Below are positions 3,901-44,330 of a stretch of DNA of 64,000 bases, in pieces. Under the pieces are notes generated by a model. That model did not search any database. It saw only the letters and a program-made list of their open reading frames with translations, and was not told the origin of the DNA. Within the stretch, counting starts at the first letter, position 1, and each line of letters starts with the position of its first letter. Position numbers and translations under genes: made by a program. The DNA is taken from contig JAQFVV010000003.1 of assembly GCA_028023455.1 (NCBI GenBank), positions 18,228,001 through 18,292,000 of the forward strand, given 5' to 3'. Source of the stretch: Epiperipatus broadwayi (Eukaryota > Animalia > Onychophora).

Positions 3901-6900
3901 ACATGGATGGGCTGCTCACCAACACGCATTAGCCAGCGTGGTGAGTTTATTGGCTTTTTATCTCTTGAGTTTAAGATTAAGAAACACCATAGTCTTTCTT
4001 CTCAGTTGCCTGATAAGGCAGAATGAATGTTTATGTAAATGATAAATATTTTTCCAATACATATATACAATTATGACAGACAAAAATAAATCATGGCCCA
4101 AGTCACCAACCAAGGCAGCGGTTGGTGGCCGAAGGCAGAGGATGCTAAGAATCCCCTGATTGCAGATCCAGGTTGCCATTTTATGACGATTCTTTATTTA
4201 GATATTTACAACTGCAGATCATTTTCAAGTGAAGGAAGATTGCAAGAATTAGAATAAGAACTGTATTATATTAAGTGGGATATTATTGGACTTTGTGAAA
4301 TTCGAAGAAAAGGTGAAGAGATAATTGATTTAAAAAGTGGACATGTACTCTATTATAAAGGCACAAATATTGGAAATACAAATGGAGTAGGATTCATTAT
4401 AAATAAAAAGTGGAAGAACAACAGTGTGGAGATTGATGGTGTATCAGACAGTGGCAAGATTAGTTATACAACTTAATAGCAGATACCAAATGCAGATAAT
4501 TCAGGTTTATGCCCCAACAAGTTCTCATAGTGATGAAGTAGTAGAAGATTTTTATATGGATGTACAATAGGCTTTCAATCAGAGTAAACAACATTTTAAA
4601 ATTGTTATGGGAGATTTTAATGCTAGAATTGGTAAACAAATGAAAGATGAAAGTGCTGTAGGTAATTTTGGTTATGGTAATAGAAATGAGAGAGGACATA
4701 GATAGACTAGTGGAGTTTGCTGAAAAAGAAAAACTTTATATTATGAATTATTTTTTTGAGAAAAATGTTAAAAGGAAATGGACATGGAAGCATCCCAATG
4801 AAGGAACAGCAGAATTGGATTATATTTTGACTAACAGAAAATATATATTTCAAGATTGTAATGTTCTTAATAAATTTAACACAGGAAGTGATCGTCGATT
4901 AGTAAGATACGAGTTAATACAAAACTAGAGAGACAAAAATTATTAAGAAAAACAATTTTTACAGTTGGTATTCCTAATCCTCAAAAACTTTCTAATGAAT
5001 TTAAATTAGAACTTACAAATCGAATTCAAGTATTAGAGAATTTGAACGTGATTCAGATTTGAATGAAATTGATATGAAAGTGATTGATACACTTTTCAAC
5101 AAAGATAGCTGGTAGAAAAAAGCAGCAATTGGCCAATAAAATTTCTACTGAGTCTGGAGAATTTATGAAGAAAAGAAGGAATATGAAGATATACAAAAAT
5201 GATGCATTAAAAAGGATTGAATATCTCGAATTTTGTAAAATGGTACGGAAAAGAGTTGAAAATGATATAAGAAAGTATAACTGTGAACTAGCAAGGAAAG
5301 CTGTAGAAGAAAATAAAAGTCTCAAGAATGTAAAACAACATTTTGGTATTGGTAGGAAATTTATATCTGCAATAAGAAAAAAAAAAGGAATTATTACTAA
5401 AAAGAGAGATGACATCATGAAATGGGTAGAAGAATTTTTATCAAGAATTATATAGTAATAAAGATCAAGTACCTCCTATATCTATTACATCTTCTGAATT
5501 GTCCAGAATTTTAAATGAAGAAGTGAGACATGCAATTAAATGTATGAAGAAAGGAAAGGCTCCAGGTAATGATGGAATTATAATTGATATATTAAAAGAA
5601 GCAGGTGAAGAAATATAATTTTTTTTAGCAAAGTTATATACCAAATGTCTAAATGATAAAGATGTATCAGATGATTGGAAGAATGCAGTAATAATATTAA
5701 TATTTAAAAAAGGTGATAAAGAAGATATTAGAAATTACAGACCTATCAGCCTTTTATCAGTTTTATACAAAATTTTTACCAAGATAATTACAACTTGTCT
5801 ACAGAGAACATTGGATTTCCACCAACCAAGAGAACAAGCTGGATTTAAAAGTGGTTTTAGTACAGTAGATCATATCCAGGTATTGAGAGAAGTTATAGAA
5901 AGGACAAATGAATATGAGTTGCCATTATGTTTTGGATTTGTAGATTATGAAAAGGCATTTGATTCTATAAACATTTCTTCAGTGATTAAAGCATTGGATC
6001 ATCAAGGTATAGATCCAGGATATTGTCATATTTTAAAGAATATTTATAAAAATGCAACAGCAACAATTAGATTACATAATGATACTGGGAAAGTCAACAT
6101 TGAGAAAGGTGTAAGACAAGGTGACTCCATATCTCCAAAACTTTTTACAGCAGTGTTGCAAGAAGTATTTTGTGGATTAAAATGGGAAACTAAAGGAGTG
6201 AAAGTAAATGGAGATTATTTAAGTCATTTAGATTTTGCAGATGATATAGTTGTTTTTGCATATAATGCTTCAGAGCTGCAGGAAATGTTGCAGGAGTTAT
6301 CAGATGAAAGTAGGACTAAAGATAAATGTTAAAAAGACTAAAGTAATGTTTAATCAATTTGAGGAAAATATGAAAATAAAGATTGATTATGATGAATTAG
6401 AAGAAGTTAACAGTTACAAATATCTTGGTCAGATTATTAATACAGATGGAAACATAATGGATGAAATTAATCATAGAATTAAACTTGGTTGGAGTGCTTT
6501 TGGTAGAAATAACTTGATACTAAAAGGAAATATGCCTATGTGTTTGAAAAGGAAGGTTTTTAACAAATGTGTTTTACCAGTTCTTACTTATGGATCTGAG
6601 ACTTGGACACTTAATAGAAGAGCAATACAGAGACTCCAGACCACTCAAAGAAGTATGGAGAGATGCATGTTGGGAGTAACAAGAAGAGATCGAAAACGCA
6701 ATGTATGGGTAAGAGAACAAACAGGTGTTACTGACCTCATTGAAAAAAATTAAAAGATTGAAGTGGAGTTGGGCTGGACATATTGCTAGAAGAGATGATA
6801 ATAGATGGACAATTAAAATCTTAAACTGGATTCCAAGAGATTGTAAAAGACCCAGAAAAAGACCACATGTGAGATGGATGGGTGAAATAAGAAAGTGTAC

Positions 6901-6995
6901 AGGGATAATGTGGAGAAGCTAAAGATCAGAGATGGATTAAACTTGGAGAGACTTTCATCTGCAAGTGGATTGATAATGGTTGATGACGATGATGA
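3901..6995 (+). mobile_element. RTE-clade non-LTR retrotransposon, near full length, with frameshifts and stops
   Basis: APE motifs (YNCRS, KWDIIGLCEIRR, ELDYILTN) and RT motifs (NYRPISLL, QAGF, FVDYEKAFDS, GVRQGDSISPKLF, FADD). C-terminal KWSWAGHIARR and a (GAT)n-type 3' tail. The 5' boundary is approximate. Confidence 0.92.
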
Positions 6996-28288: not shown

Positions 28289-30635
28289 ATGTGATGTGAT
28301 GTGATGTATTTGGCTTCTCCTTAAGCGAAGTCAAGAATATCTCAGCAACTATGCCCAGATAAACCTGTTAGCCACTTTATTTTCCATTCCCCACTCTAAG
28401 TCTTCCCATATTCTGCCCCATCCCATTTCCACAACATAACCTTTGTCAACTCTATGGCCTTTAAATCAAAATCCCCCTTATCTTTTCGCAAACCCAGCAT
28501 AAAAACTACCAACTCACTTTCTGTATTGTCACTTTGTTCATACCTATTCTCCCATAACTTCATTATCTGTACCCTTTCTGCTTTCAAGCATTTACATTCA
28601 ATCAACAGATGCCTAATATTTTCTATACCTTCCTTACACAATTTGCACGCTAAATCACCCATAGTTTTCCATTTACATGTATATTCTCTTGTTGCTAAAG
28701 ATCCCGTTCGAGCCTTAAACAATAAACTACTTTCCTTACTATTATCATAAATTAACTCGCTTCTAATATTCCGTTTACTTCTATATATATTTAAACTCTT
28801 CTTACCCTCCATACTACTTCTCCAACTCCCTATTTTTTATTAATACTTCTATTCTTTTATCCCATTCCTTACCACTATAACACTCAACAATCCTCCTAAC
28901 ACAATCATCCCACCTTTTATACAAGTATACTGATAAAAATTCTTTATCCAAATCTTTTGCATACCGCATTACCTTTCTCACCCATCTTGTTACCTGCCCT
29001 TTACTCATAACCCAATTAAACACTATTTTGGCTATTCTTTTACTATCCATGAACTGCAACCTACCAAACATTTTCATTTTACTTTTTGCATCTCTCATAT
29101 AGAAACTTGACCATCCCATTTCTCCTTGAATTGCCTCCTTTGCTGTCCACATCTCTGCATCTAATGCATATCTTCCTACTTCCCTTTGTACTTTCTCTAA
29201 ATAATCTAAAATCCTTTTACTAACACATAATGCATCATTACCATATGTTAACCCTGCTACTGCAACTCCCTTCCATATACTTCTAGCTACATCATATTTA
29301 TTATATAAAAATACTGTTGGTTTTTTTACCAAACCTTTTCTTTTCTTTGCTTCATTTACCAATTTTTTCTCCCATTCAACCAAGCAATTTTCCTGATTAC
29401 ATAAGATGATTCCCAAATACCTATATCTATCCACCACACTTAACTTTATATCCCCCAATAAAAAAACTACATCCTCTCTTTACCCACCTTTGCACATGTC
29501 CTCAACATAATATCCATATCTTCTCTTCTTTCTGCACATAAAAAGATATCATCTGCAAAAAAAAGACCCGACAAAGTATATACTCCTTTGCCACCTATTA
29601 ATGGTATCTCTACCCCTCTTCCTACTCTTTCTATTGCTTTTTCCATTTCACTCAAAAACAACAAAAACAAAATCGGTGACATAGGGCATCCTTGCCTTAA
29701 TCCCACTCCATTTTTAACTTTAACTGATTCTATATCCCCTAATTGGTAAGTATAATAATTATTTTCATATAATTTCTTAATAATATTTACTAAAGCTTCA
29801 TCCATTCCCAAATTGGCTAATCTTACCCATAATCTATTTCTATTTACTCTATCATATGCTTTCTCTATATCTATAAAACTCATATATAGTGATCTACCTG
29901 AATTCCTACTCATCTCCATAAGTGGTGTAACTACAAACAAACTATCTCCTATACGCCTATCTGACCTAAAACCTCCTTGCATTTCCTCCACTACATTATT
30001 CTCTTCCATCCATTTTACAACTCTTCCAGCTACCATATATGCGAAAACTTTATATAAAACTGATGTTACTGCTATCGGTCTATAATTATTTAACTTTCTA
30101 TGATCCTTACCCTTTCCTTTAAATAATAATCTTATTCTTGTATTACTCCAACTACCCGGAAAAACTGTCTTCTGCGCCATCTTATTAAAACATGATAATA
30201 ACTTTGCTTTTGCTCTATGCCCTAAATTCATTACCATCTCTGCTGCCCATCCATCTTAACCTCTCGCTTTTCCACTTTTCAATCTCTTTCCTGCCTCATT
30301 CAATTCATTTTTTGTGAACCTAATATTCCCACTACTAACTGCTTTCATGTTTTCTATCACTAATTCCTTCACATCTAACATCTTTTCTATATCCATTACA
30401 TATCTATTTTAAGATTTTCTCTAGCTCGCCTCTAGAGCTACATTCTATTCCCTCATCATCTATTAATACTATCTCTCTTTCCCCTACATTTCTCCTTTTA
30501 ATGTAATTCCAAAATTTTTTACTCCCATTTCTTCCACTTTTATTAATATCCTCCAACAATTTATTATTTAACTTCATCCTCTCTCTATAATTATCCATTT
30601 TAGCTAGCTTCTTCTTTTCCAAGTACTTTCCCCAT
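28289..30635 (-). mobile_element. 5'-truncated non-LTR retrotransposon (RT plus C-terminal CCHC motif)
   Basis: NYRPIAVTSVLYKVF, QGGFR, FIDIEKAYDRV, GLRQGCPMSPILF, FFADDI and CKLCKEGIENIRHLLIEC, with an (ACATC)n 3' tail at 28289-28308. Clade not assigned. Confidence 0.92.
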
Positions 30636-35964: not shown

Positions 35965-36626
35965 GGTAAGGACCCGATGCTATATCAAACTTTAGACATT
36001 ATGAAAAATTCCTGATATTTTTTTAGAAACAAATTCTATAAAATACTGTTCCAGAGATTGAATTATAAAATTTTTAAGGATTGAAATATTGAAAATGATA
36101 ATCAGTAATTCTAGAAATTTTTAAAATCATTTTAATATTTTGATTAACCAGAATGTTATTGTTATTATGAATAACAAAACTAAACACCATTTTGGATTGA
36201 TTCATTTCATTGTAAACTCTGCATTTTTCACACAAATTTACTCATATATATATATAAATTATTTCAGCATAATCCTCATGCTTAAACAAACTAAAAGAAT
36301 GTGAGCAATCTATTGTCAAAGCAACACTAATTAGGCAGTGAATTATAGTATCTTGAAAACAGACAGCCGATGTGCTTTTAATTTGTTTCAGCATGAGCAT
36401 TGTGCTGATATAATTTACATATGATAACCAGTTAGCTGTAGGCACTTATGTTTCAATATATATAGTTATTAAAATTATTCATAAATTATTTGTAGAATTA
36501 GCATATAAAAATATGCTTTCAGCTACTAAAAAAATATTCTTTGTCCATAATAGTTGAAAATATGCTTTTATAAATTAATTCTACAAAGAGATTTAATTAA
36601 AATATTGCTTTTCCTTTTTTTATTAG

Positions 36627-36775
36627 GGAGTTTACAATCGGTTACTTAGCTAAGGATGAAAATGGACAAGAAGTTTATTTGTCAATGTTATCAGACTGGG
36701 ATTTAGACGCTGCTTTCTTGAGTTCCTCAGATCCCAGTTTAAGATTGAAAGTGGATCTCAAACCATTTGAAGAAG
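36627..36775 (+). CDS. TBC1D25: TBC1D25 coding exon (EFTIGYLAKDENGQEVYLSMLSDWDLDAAFLSSSDPSLRLKVDLKPFEE)
   Basis: Acceptor cctttttttattAG and donor AAG|GTAATT. Phases are compatible with both neighbouring exons. Contains the conserved GQEVYLSxLSDWDL motif. Confidence 0.93.
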
Positions 36776-37597
36776 GTAATTGTAAATAAATAAAAAAATA
36801 ATTCATATTATTGCAATAATCATTTCACAGGAAAATATTAATTGCTAATATTACTAATGAAATATTGATTGATAAAAACAAATTAATGACAATTATTTTA
36901 CGATTGGAAAATTAGTAAGTTGATCTTTCCTATATTATTATAAATATATATTAGTAATTAATGAGGAAGTCTCCTTAGGCAAAAATCCATATTTTCTTAT
37001 CTGAGTTGTTCAAACCATTCTACAAATAACAGCATAATTACTTTTCTTAATATCTCTATTGTTCCTTACAAAATAGCCTATATAGTTTCCAGTTTTATCT
37101 CTGAGCTTCTCGCCAGTGATGCCCATAATGACCGATAAATTCTTGAACTAATTCTGAAGAAAGATTGAACAGGACTAAATCACAGAGAATTTTTTTTATG
37201 ATTATCTGATAATTGTTTATAAATAAGAGAAGCCTTTTTGGAACTGGAATAATATTGACAAACAGTAAAAAGTTACACAGGTAAGTAATTATAAAGATTG
37301 AAAGCTGCACATTGAATATTGAAGTATATTCTGAAGATTTAAATAACAGTAATAATGTATAACCTTACCAGAAGAATTTATGTAATAAATAATAATTTTA
37401 ATATATATAAAGTATCGGTAAATAATATACTGTTTGGTATATATATTTTAAATAAAAACAATTACCAACTTCAAGAAACATATTCTTAGTTTTTTCAAGA
37501 ATTCTCCCTTGTTCATTCATTTTTTTAATATGGTCATCATTCTTAATTTATAGTGATTTAAATTATTTCTCTTTGTTTTAACTTTATATATATATAT

Positions 37598-37793
37598 AAT
37601 TAAAAGTATAGGGAATTTGAACTCAGATTTTCAAGCATCCTCCATCCATCCACACTATTTCACACAACCGATAAACATGACTACACACATGAATTCTACA
37701 TGTGTGTGGTGATGTTTATCAGTTGTGTGAGATAGTGTGGATGGATGGAGGGTGCTTGAAAATCTGAGTTCAAATCCCCTATACTTACAATTA
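37598..37793. repeat. ~196-bp imperfect hairpin with an outward-facing B-box-like motif in each arm
   Basis: Arms GTATAGGGAATTTGAACTCAGATTTTCAAGCATCCTCCATCC... and ...GGATGGAGGGTGCTTGAAAATCTGAGTTCAAATCCCCTATAC, with TA-rich flanks. Confidence 0.9.
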
Positions 37794-38861
37794 AGCTCCA
37801 GGTTTGTGAAGAGTGCCTGGTTTTCAAATATATATAATTGAAACTGTCAGATTCAAACAAACAAAAATATACAAAAAAATATTAAATAATACCTCAAGAT
37901 GCATTTTTATTGAATTAGTGTCAGTTGACCCAAATCATCAAACCTCTCAAATTTTTTATTGTTATTATTTATCTATCATATTTTGCCACAATTTAATCCA
38001 CAAGCATTACAGTTCCCATATGGGTATAATATTTTAGATAAATATATGGATGTTATTAATAATTATTCATCAATCTAAAGATTGTTAAACTGTATTATTA
38101 TTAGTCAAAATGTAGACTTTAAACTTAATTAAATATCAATATATACATGTATGATATTATTATTTTTAGCTTTATTTTAAATATATATTTGAAAACTTCT
38201 TTTAATACTCTCACATCCTAAATAAATTAATAAAGGCATTGGGAAGAAGGTAATGACCCAAAATGTATTTCTGCTGTATAAAAATACTACTACTGTACAT
38301 GTATAGAGTTAGTAAGAAACAGTTATATTGATCTTTAACAGAGTTTATAAATCTATCCAAATACAGACAATATTCTTATTTTATCTAAACAAAATGAAAA
38401 CTTATAATATGAAAAAATCTTTTGCAATAGTAGTCTCGTAGCCTAACTTATTTCCCTCATTCGTCTAAGTTTGGATTAAAATTAATTTGTGATGCAAGTA
38501 TTTCTGGATAATATTTTAAATATTATGAGAAATGTTACTGGCAAACTCAAGTCTTCCTTTATAATGACTTCTCATTCTTTCACTTAGTCTTCTGCCAGAT
38601 ATTAAAAGAGAAGCTTCCTTACAGAAAATGCATAAAAAGCTGTTAAGTAGACCAGACTTGTCACTAATTCAACAAATAGTACAGTATCCAAATGTGTAAG
38701 TTATCCAGAGCAGTTATTTTTACCTTTCATTTTTAGGTATTATTAGAATATATTTTCTTTACAATATATATATATATATTAATTCTAATATTTTCATGGA
38801 TAAAAGATGTCATATTATTATTACTATTTGCGGGATATTCCGTGTAGTGAAAAAGCTAAAT

Positions 38862-38901
38862 GCTGACGTTTCAGTACAATATCAAGTACCTTCCTCAGAG
38901 C
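38862..38901 (-). ncRNA. Minimal type-I hammerhead ribozyme of the PLE terminal repeat, core intact
   Basis: Minus strand: GCT CTGAGGA A GGTAC ttgatatt GTACT GAAA CGTC AGC. Palindromic stem III (ACGT); predicted cleavage after GUC, between 38865 and 38864. Confidence 0.85.
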
Positions 38902-39736
38902 GTCCTCTTTCTCAAATCATAAGAATGCATGTGAGATTTAAAAACGTTTTTATCGTTTTCTTTCTCCTCATATTTAAATTCTATTGGTTGAGAAGTTTTA
39001 AAATTTATTTTCTCTTCCAATAGCTTCTTCCAAATGTTGTTAATCTTCTTTAATTCACACCTTTCATTTATGCTCTTGGGTCTTTTAAAAATCTCTATAG
39101 CTTCTCTTAGCAATCTCTGGTCATAATTGTTCAATTTTTGCTAAAATATTTGTTTTTTCAAAATTGATATCATGATTTGTTAATTTTATATGAGAATAAA
39201 TAGCTGATGAATTGGATTTTTCTCACTGCCAGAATGTGTTCTTCCTTTCTAATATTTATTCTACGATTAGTCTGTCCTATATATGTATGTGGACAGACCC
39301 TACATGGAATTTCATATACACCATGACACTCCAAAGCAATTTTATCTTTAGGAAGTGGAAATATTTCACTAATTTTTTTATAAGTAGTGTAAATTGTGTG
39401 AATATTATTATTTTTTTAAAATGTTACCAATTCTATCAGTTACTCCTTTTATATATGGCAAAATTGTCTTAATTTTTGATGTATCAAAATCTTTTTTCTT
39501 TTGATATGTATAAGCCCTATTAATAATGTTGTAATTAAAACTGTTACGAAGAAGCATTTTATTAGTAGCAAAAAGGTCCCGGTGAAAATGGCTATCATCA
39601 GAAAGTCTCTTTGTTCTATCCAATAATGTCTTTGCTACTGAAAATAGTTGTGCAGGATGGTGATGAGAGGAAAAATGCAGATATCTCCCAGAGTGTGTTG
39701 GTTTTTTATATATACCATGGGATAAAGAAAGAGGAC

Positions 39737-39776
39737 GCTCTGAGAAAGGTACTTGATATTGTACTGAAACGTCAGC
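39737..39776 (+). ncRNA. Hammerhead copy with G8>A (position 39745)
   Basis: Identical to 38862-38901 except that CTGAGGA reads CTGAGAA. Confidence 0.82.
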
Positions 39777-40005
39777 ATTTAGCTTTTTCACTACACGGAA
39801 TATCCCGCAAATAGTAATAATAATATGATATATATATATATTAGATAATAATCAATAAAGCAATATCGTATATAGCATGGCATTGATTTTATGAGCTTGT
39901 GTTTATAAATATGTAATATAGAGAGTGTATCAATAACTCAAACAAACTCTTAATTGAGAAGTGCAGTAAGAGAAAATATTTAAATCTTTATCTGGAACAT
40001 TTCCA

Positions 40006-40050
40006 TCCCCAGACCAATTGGTTTTGAGCTTTTGGCTCTCTCAGTGAAGA
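40006..40050 (-). ncRNA. Hammerhead relic, array copy 1 (1-nt core deletion, G12>A)
   Basis: TCTTCA CTGAGA GAGC CAAAA GCTC AAAA CCAATTGGTC TGGGGA. Confidence 0.75.
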
Positions 40051-40568
40051 GCTAGAATATTCAAACACTATATTTAAAATATCAACTCAAAGCTGGCACT
40101 TATTTAATACGTAACATTTAAGTAGAAACTCTGAAATTTTCGGACATAAAAATGTCTTTAGCTCCAGCTATCTAACTTAAATAGCTATATGGGACTGAAC
40201 CAAATTCAGATCTATCCTATATTAATAGCCTTAGCATTGCCAAGGCCTTAAAGAGCTTGTTTGAGCTATTGGTATGCTCCCTATATTACATATTTGTAAA
40301 TACAAACTCATAAAAGCAATCTCACATTATATATGACTTGCTTTATTGATTATTATAATTTTACCTTTAAGGCCTTGGCAATGCTAAGGCTATTAATATA
40401 TGATAGATTTGAACTTGGTTCAGTCCCACATAGTTGTTTAAATTAGATAGTTGGAGTTAAAGACATTTTCATGTCCGAAAATTTCAGAGTTTCTATTTAA
40501 ATGTTATGTATTAAATAAGTGCTGGGCTTTGAATTGATATTTTAGATCTAGTGTCTGAATATTCTAGC

Positions 40569-40614
40569 TCTTTACTGAGGTGAGCCAAAAGCTCAAAACC
40601 AATTGCTCTGTGGA
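40569..40614 (+). ncRNA. Hammerhead relic, array copy 2
   Basis: TCTTTA CTGAGGT GAGC CAAAA GCTC AAAA CCAATTGCTC TGTGGA. Confidence 0.7.
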
Positions 40615-40987
40615 TGGGAATGTTCCAGATAGAGATTTTAAATATTTTCTCTTATTGCACTTATCAATTAAGAGCTTGTTTGAGCTATTGGTACACTCTC
40701 TATATTACATATTTGTAAATACAAGCTTATAAAAGCAATGTCATGCTATATATGACTTGCTTTATTGATGATTATAATTTTACCTTTAAGGCCTTGGCAA
40801 TGTTAAGGTTATTAATGTATGGTAGATCTGAATTTGGTTCAGTCCCATATAGCTATTTAAGTTAAATAGCTGGAGTTAAAGACATTTTCTTGTCAGAAAA
40901 TTTCAGAGTTTCTACTTGAATATTACATATGAAATAAGTGCTGGGTTTTGAGTTGATATTTTAGATCTAGTGCCTGAATTTTCTAGC

Positions 40988-41033
40988 TCCTCACTGACAT
41001 GAGCCAAAAGCTCAAAACCAATTGATCTGGGGA
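40988..41033 (+). ncRNA. Hammerhead relic, array copy 3
   Basis: TCCTCA CTGACAT GAGC CAAAA GCTC AAAA CCAATTGATC TGGGGA. Confidence 0.7.
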
Positions 41034-41511
41034 TGGGAATGTTCCAGATGAGAGATTTTAAATATTTTCTCTTACCACACTTATCAAATAAGAGCTTGTG
41101 TAGGCTATTGCTACGCTTCCTATATTACATATATATTAGATATATATATTTATTTCTACTGCTATGAAAATACAGTAAAACCTTTAAATGAGTTTTCCAA
41201 TTTGCATCATCACAATCTCTTCTTATTAACAGAAATTTTTTGTCATATTTTAAAGTTAATGTCCATTTTTTGAGTGTGTGTGACCTTGCACATTGTTGCT
41301 GAGCATATGTAAAGCTGTGGGAAAGAATAGAATTTATTATAAACTCTACGGGTATTTTCATGTATTTGTGTCAGTTCATATCAAACAAAGATGGATTTTA
41401 TTATGGATTCCTATATTTTATCATCTTCAATCTATAGAATTAAATAATAATAAAAAACACTATGTTTAAAAAAAAAAAGCAAACATTAATGTTTTTTTTT
41501 TTATATGTCAA

Positions 41512-41583
41512 AGCATTGACCAGGAAGCAAACCCGGGCCAGCTGCTTAGAAGGCAGCTACGCTAACTACTAGGCCACCAACGC
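41512..41583 (-). pseudogene. tRNA-Gly(TCC)-derived pseudogene with the anticodon changed to TCT
   Basis: GCGTTGGTGGCCTAGTAGTTAGCGTAGCTGCCT-TCT-AAGCAGCTGGCCCGGGTTTGCTTCCTGGTCAATGC. Cloverleaf stems still pair, but the T-loop is mutated (TTTGCTT). An A11 run and then a T11 run lie downstream. Confidence 0.85.
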
Positions 41584-42015
41584 TCTATAAAATTGAAGTT
41601 ACTTTCTATACAAATTATTTTAAATCAGCGAACATTTTTGTTGTCAAGATGTATAAACATGTGTGTGTGTAATCAATCAGTAAATAAATAAATCACAGTA
41701 AGCTTTAATTTTTAAAAAATATTAAATAAGAAATAAATTGTAGAAGCACTTTCAATTATTACTGTGTAATTTAAATGTAATGGACAATTAGTATTAACAT
41801 AGGAAATGATTTGCATAATACACAAGATTGTAATGTAAGCATTATGAGAGTCAATTAAATGATCTATTTTATAAGAGAAAGCAATTGATAATGATTACAT
41901 TGCAAGAATTGAAAACACTTCTACATCTTAATTTATTATATATATTGTTTGCAGTTTCTATTATACATATTATTTGTAATGTGAAAAATATTTTTATTAT
42001 TTTTTTTTTTTTTAG

Positions 42016-44330
42016 GTTTAGAAGATTGGGATATAATCCGACCTCTTGACATTCCTCAGCCCCACATTTCTGCAGAACATAGATTTCTTCCTGGAACAAT
42101 ACTTAATCAGATGGAAAGAACATTCAGTTATGTGCAACGAGCATTTAATTTGAGTGATAATGAAGCTTATCAGCAACCTATCAAATTACTCAAACGTGCT
42201 ATGAGTGATTCTGAATTTCATAATTTTCTTGATTCTGATGGACGATTAATAAAGCCACAAGAATTGCGACTGAGCGTGTACCAAGGTGGTGTTGAACCAT
42301 CATTGCGTAAGGTTGTATGGAGGCATGTACTGAATGTGTTTCCTCATGGTATGACAGGAGCTGAACGTATGGACTATATGAAACAAAAATCACAAGAATA
42401 TTGCAGTTTGAGGGACACATGGCAGAAAGAAATTAAAAAAGGTCGCACTACTGATGAAATTATGTATATAACAAATATGGTTCGTAAAGATGTTTTACGG
42501 ACTGATCGTACTCATAAATTTTATGCTGGGTCTGATGATAATAAAAATGTTGTTTCATTATTTAATATTTTGACCACATATGCCTTGTCTCATCCTGATG
42601 TATCTTATTGCCAGGGAATGAGTGATATTGCATCACCATTATTAGTCATTATGAAAGATGAAGCAAATGCATATATATGTTTTTGTGCGCTAATGAAAAG
42701 ACTTAAACCAAACTTTATGATTGATGGAGAAGCTATGACTAAGAAGTTTCAACAGCTTTCAGAACTATTACAGTACTATGATGCTGAATTTTATGAATAT
42801 CTGAAACAAAATCAAGCTGATGATTTGCTTTTTTGCTACCGCTGGCTTTTACTTGAACTGAAGAGAGAATTTGCTTTTGATGATGCTCTTATCATGCTTG
42901 AAGTCATGTGGAGTTCTCTACCTCCAGATCCTCCAGAAAAGGAAATTGCTTTAACTGATAAAGACTTTTCTCAGATTAGTACAACACAGTCACCTAAATT
43001 TTTCACAAAAGAAACTCCTTACACTAAATTGTGTGCAATTCGTAAAGCATCTTCTTTTAGTCAGTCTCATTCATTGAAATCTATTACAATAACAAGCCCT
43101 GCTAAAACAGAGCAGAAATTAGAAGTATTAAATGGTGGTAGTGCCGAAGGAAGTCCTGATAAGTCGCAAAATAAAAAGCTTAATAGAACAGATAGTGCTT
43201 GCATGTCTGATAGTGAATTGTCTATGGATGATTCTAGTGAATATTTACAAATGAGTATTTCCATGACTCGAGAATTACGCATGGAACTAGCCAATCTTAA
43301 TAGTTCATTGCCAGGAAAATATTTACGCTATACACGTTTTGATTCTGAAGAATCTGAAACACCCACATCTACAGAAGGTAGAGATTTTTCAGGTAAAAGT
43401 TTTGATCATTCAGATGATATTCAAGAAGTTAGCGAACAGCAAGTTTCTGATACTGAACGGGATATATCTGAAATGAAAGGATCAGATAGTGACACAGATT
43501 TTCCTGACATTTCATGTGTGCTAGATGAAGTTATTGAAACACCAGTTAAAAAAGCTAAACCTAAAAACCCATTAGATGAAGAACAAAATCAAATACATGA
43601 GGAAGTTATTGTAAATGGTAAAAATGAAGAAAATGATGAGGAAGATGTTACCATTGAGGTTGAAAATCAGAAAGTTGCTGTTAAAACAATAATTAATCGT
43701 AACATAGAAAAGAGAAACTGTATGAATGCTCTGCATATTCTAAATAATTCTAAAAATGAGTGGAATAAGGATGCTGATGATGAAGATGGCATTTCAGAAT
43801 GTGGACCACAATTAAATAGGAATTCACAAGTAAGGACTAAAACTGAGGAATGGGATTTAGAAATGAATTCCTCAGAATCCTATAGTAATAACACAAATAC
43901 TAAAGCAAATGAAGAATCATTACATAGCAGCTCAGATTCTCCCCGACATCCAGCAGGTATAATTGATTCTGGTGTTACTGATCTCAGTACACCATTTCTT
44001 CAATCATGTGAGGACTTTGTGGAGACCACAAATATCATTAGTTACCATAAAAATGTCAAAGATGCTTCTAAACATCTTCCGCCACCACAAGAATTTGGAG
44101 GTGGCAATCCTTTTATGATGTTTTTATGTCTTACCTTACTACTTCAACATCGTGACCATATTATGAAAAACAAAATGGACTACAATGATTTGGCAATGCA
44201 TTTTGACAAAATGGTACGTAAACATAATGTTAATCGGGTTTTACACCAAGCTCGGTCATTATTTACAGAATATTTACAACATTGTAAACAAGAAGAGAAT
44301 AGTGATGAACTTTCCGATCTTAGTGTATAG
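42016..44330 (+). CDS. TBC1D25: TBC1D25 terminal coding exon: LIR (EDWDII), Rab-GAP TBC domain, long acidic insertion, conserved C-terminal block
   Basis: T13-AG acceptor, in frame with ORF 42111-44330. Contains GGVEPSLRKVVW, KDVLRTDR (Arg finger), YCQGMSD (Gln finger), FCYRWLLLELKREF and FGGGNPFMMFLC; stop TAG at 44328-44330. Confidence 0.96.

Follow-up and report, generated by a model that had tools for sequence, protein, structure and literature searches.

Loss of hammerhead G8 in one arm of an intronic Penelope-like insertion of Epiperipatus broadwayi is consistent with neutral decay

Results

Host gene and intron

The window (the whole 64,000-nt stretch of Epiperipatus broadwayi DNA analysed here) has a G+C content of 25-32% and belongs to an assembly of 5.6 Gb. 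The host features were read on its plus strand as follows.

36627..36776, plus strand: upstream coding exon of the putatively TBC1D25-like host gene; open frame, with a polypyrimidine tract and AG on its 5' side and GTAAT on its 3' side
36777..42014, plus strand: host intron, from splice signals and phase; holds the Penelope-like element, a 419-nt tandem array and a tRNA-like sequence
42015..44327, plus strand: large downstream host exon; PF00566 (E 1e-36) and PF23436 (E 9e-10), acceptor site seen

Pfam placed the RabGAP-TBC match (PF00566, E 1e-36) in a 781-aa open frame at 41985-44327 (+), and the presence of this domain in the host gene is certain. The exon within that frame starts at 42015, with a long polypyrimidine tract and AG directly 5'. 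The upstream exon is bounded by an acceptor AG at 36625-36626 and a donor GT at 36777, and its phase is compatible with that of the exon at 42015. Zero Pfam matches were found for the upstream exon (36627-36776). The sequence that it encodes seems to resemble the N-terminus of TBC1D25. The Atlas lead for the host protein was the TBC1D25 cluster, with a score of 0.88 and 187 shared features. From this lead and the N-terminal motif, we provisionally call the host gene TBC1D25-like. The host exons were examined one at a time, and the intron was drawn from splice signals and phase rather than from a joined spliced model.

The same intron carries an Rfam tRNA match at 41512-41583 (-) (RF00005, 42.4 bits), which may represent either a genuine tRNA gene or a tRNA-derived SINE head. 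Elsewhere in the window, long RT-like open frames lie at 4258-6919 (+) and 28399-30255 (-), for example with YRPISLLSVLYK and NYRPIAVTSVLYK; their sequences suggest non-LTR retrotransposon copies.

The Penelope-like element and its two arms

A Penelope-like element (PLE) lies within the host intron. Its parts are listed below.

38764..38781, no strand: left (TA)n microsatellite target, from the sequence; sampled sister insertions are nearly all (TA)n-flanked
38780..38809, minus strand: 30-nt PLE "tail" extension past the 3' end of the long arm; an extension of ~31 nt is present in most sisters
38810..38912, minus strand: end of the long arm, the last 103 nt at the true 3' end of the PLE, with a core-intact minimal hammerhead
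38913..39725, minus strand: 5'-truncated PLE body, with the C-terminal RT linker and a GIY-YIG-like endonuclease ORF, broken by indels
39726..39828, plus strand: short arm, an inverted 103-nt copy of the PLE 3' end; G8 to A at 39745, sense to the host pre-mRNA
39829..39842, no strand: right (TA)n target, abutting the short arm directly with no tail extension

By arm alignment and by direct comparison, the reverse complement of 38810-38912 is identical to 39726-39828 at 102 of 103 positions; repeat finding gives the inverted arm pair as 106 nt at 98%. The sole mismatch is at arm position 20, where the minus strand has G at 38893 and the plus strand has A at 39745. The left-arm box reads CUGAGGA and the right-arm box CUGAGAA; the base in which they differ is G8 of the CUGANGA box. 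The arm identity and the position of the mismatch had both been claimed in the initial annotation, and both were borne out by these comparisons. The inverted repeat formed by the arms is far beyond chance; the placement of the mismatch is not. Since the PLE sits within the plus-strand intron at 36777-42014, the arm with A at 39745 is the one found in sense RNA. The earlier assignment of the mutant arm to the sense strand of the TBC1D25-like pre-mRNA, and of the intact arm to the antisense strand, thus agrees with the exons, the splice signals and the RabGAP-TBC domain.

The remnant of the PLE ORF was found on the minus strand between the arms, with its pieces in three frames: the end of the RT region (YKKPTHSGRYLHFSSHH), a GIY-YIG-like motif (GVYEIPCRVCPHTYIGQT) and the C-terminal end. 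Sister copies have one continuous ORF across the body region that is spread over three frames in the window copy. The GIY-YIG match (PF01541) was weak, with an E value of about 0.03 and 14.9 bits against a cut-off of 22.6 bits. It spans profile positions 1-67 of 78 in the expected place of the ORF, and GVYEIPC...YIGQT is visible by eye. A search of the PDB with a sister endonuclease ORF gave no match. An RVT_1 domain (E 6e-17) was identified further upstream in a sister copy (L020:1971-3815:-); the truncation of the window copy lies downstream of the RT core, which this copy therefore lacks. To our knowledge, endonuclease-bearing PLEs are absent from mammals. The insertion architecture, the ORF remnant and the RVT_1 domain of this sister confirm that the arms belong to a PLE, as had been proposed.

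Sister ORFs (e.g., L009:1589-2647:-) end at a TGA that forms U4-G5-A6 of the CUGA box, corresponding to 38896-38898 (-) in the window, and their coding region takes in the 5' strand of helix I (…RKRTL stop). Because the sister ORFs end in the CUGA box, the left arm represents the genuine 3' end of an element that lies on the minus strand and is truncated at its 5' end. The right arm repeats the last 103 nt of this element in inverted orientation.

The hammerhead motif and its likely activity

In the 5' to 3' direction, both arms contain GAAAGAG (outer helix I), GCU (inner helix I), the CUGA box and a bulged A, followed by GGUAC, an 8-nt loop and GUACU (helix II), and then by GAAA, CGUC, AGC and CUUUUUC. 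The GAAA box (G12, A13, A14 and A15.1) is followed by U16.1 and a non-G cleavage site (GAAACGUC) in both arms. The left arm (-) carries CUGANGA with C3, U4, G5, A6, G8 and A9, whereas the right arm departs from it at G8. In the long arm, the hammerhead occupies ~38849-38911 (-), with G8 at 38893 and the predicted cleavage after the C at 38865. The predicted fold contains a helix II of 5 bp (GGUAC/GUACU) with a 5' bulged A and an outer helix I of GAAAGAG/CUUUUUC. Inner helix I (GCU/AGC) was assigned by inspection, and both arms have a GUC cleavage triplet. The copies vary too little for covariation in helices I and II to be informative.

The hairpin of helix III is absent and the 4-nt palindrome ACGU stands in its place, which fits the definition of a minimal hammerhead (min-HHR; PMC4209133) and not that of a canonical monomer. 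The layout of the boxes and helices is accordingly read as that of a type I hammerhead with helix III apparently reduced to the ACGU palindrome. Rfam hammerhead models gave zero matches, either at the gathering score or at E values up to 10. Such an outcome is to be expected where the hairpin of helix III is lacking, and after these negative results the motif was judged by its core boxes and helices.

Activity would be possible only as a dimer, through the ACGU palindrome. The best predicted fold of the monomer pairs CUGA with UCAG at -16.8 kcal/mol, and the hammerhead-type arrangement has -13.0 kcal/mol. No second copy of the PLE hammerhead was found on the plus strand of the 64-kb window. 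Folding of the sense RNA predicts a stem between the two arms along the full 103 bp, with one C-A mismatch at the G8 position, and this foldback stem would compete with any ribozyme fold in the pre-mRNA. Cleavage by a single PLE min-HHR is undetectable and dimers cleave weakly (Cervera and De la Pena, PMC4209133). The PLE hammerhead of Anolis required its own protein for cleavage, and insertion in vitro could proceed without that cleavage (PMC11167929). In the light of the hairpin-less helix III, the need for a dimer and the 103-bp stem, the threat to the host would be low, and it is unlikely that even the intact version would cut the host RNA. The initial annotation had treated G8 as essential for hammerhead catalysis, in line with a PLE hammerhead in which G8 and C3 mutants each lose cleavage (PMC11167929). 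The change of G8 to A very probably abolishes any residual catalytic ability of the short arm.

Family size and insertion architecture

Copies in the genome were collected with a 916-nt query and with IUPAC patterns, and the comparison between them was one of counts and positions. The query gave 1,880 candidate places, and the 40 that were scored were 91-98% identical to it. The family has at least ~5,800 tails in the 5.6-Gb genome, with 5,826 having at most one mismatch over the 32-nt ribozyme stretch.

In 30 fetched loci and in the genome-wide listing, the usual order of tails was a minus-strand copy and then a plus-strand copy, separated by a gap of ~30 nt to several kb. Most insertions carry the ~31-nt extension at one end only, and the other end runs directly into the flank. 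The flanks of the sampled sister insertions are (TA)n almost everywhere. An inverted 5'-truncated copy, a one-sided tail of 30-40 bp and a microsatellite target are the hallmarks of PLEs (Craig et al. 2021, PMC8557442). The twin-arm architecture is the norm of this family and is known for PLEs. Nicking and extension of both strands of the target has been shown in vitro for a purified PLE protein (PMC11167929); such activity provides a natural mechanism for outward-facing copies that share their 3' nucleotide, and we extend it to the Epiperipatus family by inference.

Many insertions of the family are near-perfect palindromes of ~2 kb with arms of ~1 kb; in five such loci (L003 409-2419, L004 1498-3490, L007 533-2419, L012 1498-3532 and L028 137-2417), the arms are 95.6-98.9% identical. 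In these palindromic sisters, both priming events seem often to halt at a similar point.

Decay of the window copy

A change was scored as private if it differs from the majority state shared by at least 80% of 39 aligned copies. By this measure, 8 changes are private to the long arm over its 916 nt (0.87% per site), including four substitutions and the ORF-breaking indels near 39417, 39225 and 39126. For the short arm the figure is 1 in 103 nt (0.97%), a density matching that of the long arm. Each arm has 12 strictly conserved core positions; given 9 changes over 1,019 nt, the calculated chance of at least one core hit is ~10% for the sense arm and ~19% for either arm. The initial annotation had itself cautioned that a single event cannot exclude chance. 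It had also described the insertion as young. The window copy is indeed among the less diverged copies of the family, but its youth is relative only and its ORF is broken in three places. The identity of paired arms is 93-99%, no higher than that between unrelated copies, as would be expected for a burst. The identity between arms therefore dates the insertion no better than the private changes do.

Genome-wide decay of G8 and neighbouring sites

The base at G8 is G in 40 of the 41 other sampled tails, and the ancestral base of the family at this position is G. Among the 4,184 genomic copies that match exactly at all other positions of the 32 nt, G8 is kept in 4,086 (97.7%) and lost in 98, with G-to-A accounting for 86 of the 98. 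The corresponding counts at four G sites, each from otherwise exact 32-mers, were as follows.

G8, essential core: 98 non-G copies
N7, unconstrained neighbour of G8: 86 non-G copies
G5, essential core: 52 non-G copies
G30, loop 2: 52 non-G copies

The mean per position over the 32 nt is 54, from 1,740 single-mismatch copies among the 5,826 with at most one mismatch. G-to-A changes number 86 at G8, 63 at N7 and 34 at the loop G. G8-to-A is the most frequent change at the four counted G sites, and there may thus be a small site-specific excess. G5, which is equally essential, shows no excess, as its count of 52 is the same as that of G30 in the loop. In the inserted copies, core bases are neither shielded nor preferentially lost; it is simply that the two neighbouring Gs of the GG dinucleotide mutate more readily. 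Most variation of the tails is CpG decay, including that of the CpG central to the ACGU palindrome.

Two inverted pairs, C221:1525489-1525554 and C7139:146815-146884, have the same N7 variant in both arms. Being common to both arms, this variant came from the template. No inverted pair sharing a G8 variant was found among the 98 G8-variant copies. This hints, with small numbers, that G8-mutant templates fail to propagate.

Other hammerhead-like motifs

A 419-nt unit is repeated 2.1 times at 40251-41132 with 88% identity and adjoins the right (TA)n flank of the PLE; an inverted partial copy of the unit lies upstream of the array at ~39866-40253. On the plus strand, each unit has CUGAGGU or CUGACAU, AAAAC in place of GAAAC, and the palindrome CAAUUG. 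We considered the array as an intact sense hammerhead in the same intron and rejected it, since its cores are degenerate.

An exon of Vps54 was found at C10:5258372-5258467 (-), with core-intact hammerhead-like motifs of other families within 50 kb at C10:5220218 (-) and C10:5270963 (+). The motif at C10:5220218 is on the same strand as the exon, 38 kb downstream. The Vps54_N family match falls on a different contig from the exon at C10. The motif at C10:5220218 is at most a candidate for an intact sense-intronic counterexample, since it may lie outside the gene.

Discussion

We interpret the locus as an ordinary dead insertion of an abundant PLE family into an intronic (TA)n tract, with the G8 change as neutral decay, and assign this reading a probability of about 0.8. 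The insertion consists of two 5'-truncated copies of 916 and 103 nt placed head to head, with their identical 3' ends outward. It may have formed when reverse transcription, beginning at a defined 3' site of the element RNA, was primed by both nicked strands of the target. Since insertion, the copy would have decayed neutrally by ~0.9% per site, and the one G-to-A transition of the short arm may have landed on G8 by happenstance. Alternatively, the G8 change could have originated as a copying error during insertion. With ~100 G8-dead tails in the genome, some necessarily lie on the sense strand of introns. In the thousands of twin-arm insertions of this family, the decay of hammerhead cores keeps pace with that of unconstrained neighbouring bases, and inserted ribozymes are neither protected nor purged. 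The family provides a clean natural data set of ~5,800 dated tails, with one hammerhead per strand per insertion.

The initial annotation had suggested that the insertion was tolerated because its sense ribozyme had been inactivated. On this account, a sense hammerhead would cut the TBC1D25 pre-mRNA, and only an insertion allele dead at G8 could persist. The lone difference between the arms does strike an essential core base in the sense arm, and G8-to-A is somewhat commoner genome-wide than changes at the three other G sites. In addition, hammerhead-bearing retrozymes are reported to be mildly depleted from Xenopus introns (preprint 10.64898/2026.07.22.740005). However, this is one event whose chance, with 9 private changes among 1,019 nt, is ~10%, and genome-wide G8 decays like the non-essential N7 and core G5 like the loop G. 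Each twin-arm insertion puts a hammerhead on both strands, yet 97.7% keep G8. Moreover, the motif lacks a helix III hairpin, the dimer partner that it would need is missing from the transcript, and the arms would be sequestered in the predicted 103-bp stem. Single PLE min-hammerheads are inactive (PMC4209133), and one needed its own protein (PMC11167929). Against this neutral-rate loss of G8, the proposal finds no support: no evidence points to a host need for G8 inactivation, and we consider it highly improbable that selection favoured the dead allele. Were it true, it would be the first evidence of a strand-specific cost to a host gene from transposon-borne ribozymes. We give hardly any credence to a general form of the idea, in which sense-intronic PLE hammerheads would be mildly deleterious and would lose their cores faster than antisense or intergenic ones, with this locus as one instance.

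It is very unlikely that the arms are actually identical and that the A at 39745 stems from faulty assembly or polishing of highly repeated foldback sequence. The thousands of near-identical copies and the palindromic structure would favour such an error, and the palindromic structure of PLEs does give assembly problems (PMC8557442). The change from GGAA to GAAA is furthermore a shift at the border of two short homopolymers. Shifts at homopolymer boundaries are an error-prone context for the consensus of long reads. On the other hand, the remainder of the short arm is perfect, the similar density of private changes in the long arm predicts one real substitution, and the identical substitution is present in 85 other copies. 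A further explanation, that the difference was present from insertion by way of two template RNAs or of a reverse-transcriptase error in one arm, with the site unchanged since integration, seems to us exceedingly improbable. It would fit with arms made by separate priming events, as we infer from work on a purified PLE protein (PMC11167929), and the N7 variants in both arms at C221 and C7139 show that template variants are inherited. G-to-A is a common signature of reverse transcription or deamination, and the change at 39745 fits it. On present data, a difference of this origin is indistinguishable from a post-insertion mutation. None of the 98 G8 variants is common to both arms of an inverted pair, so G8-mutant templates are not obviously circulating. 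Neutral decay of an ordinary insertion remains our preferred interpretation.

The motif resembles the min-HHRs of metazoan PLEs (PMC4209133) in its CUGANGA and GAAA boxes, its long helix II with a 5' bulged base, the short ACGU palindrome that stands in place of a helix III hairpin and implies action as a dimer, its location in the terminal repeat of a PLE and its thousands of copies per genome. It differs from them in that the CUGA box supplies the stop codon of the ORF, one copy at the locus has G8 changed to A, and Rfam gives zero matches. All three hallmarks of the PLEs described by Craig et al. (PMC8557442) are present at the locus and at sister loci. In contrast to those elements, the inverted copy is very short (103 nt) with no tandem pseudo-LTR, and many sisters are symmetric palindromes of ~2 kb.

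As in LINE-1 twin priming, both target strands prime reverse transcription and an inverted structure results. In LINE-1, the second priming takes place within that same RNA molecule and the inverted segment does not reproduce its 3' end, whereas both arms here end at exactly the same 3' terminal nucleotide. The amniote intronic hammerheads Hammerhead_HH9 and HH10 are full three-helix ribozymes in sense orientation that purifying selection keeps intact. Like them, the locus has a hammerhead motif in sense orientation within an intron of a protein-coding gene, although its motif is the recent passenger of a transposon and is without a helix III hairpin. The retention of HH9 and HH10 is the opposite of the premise that sense intronic hammerheads must be disabled.
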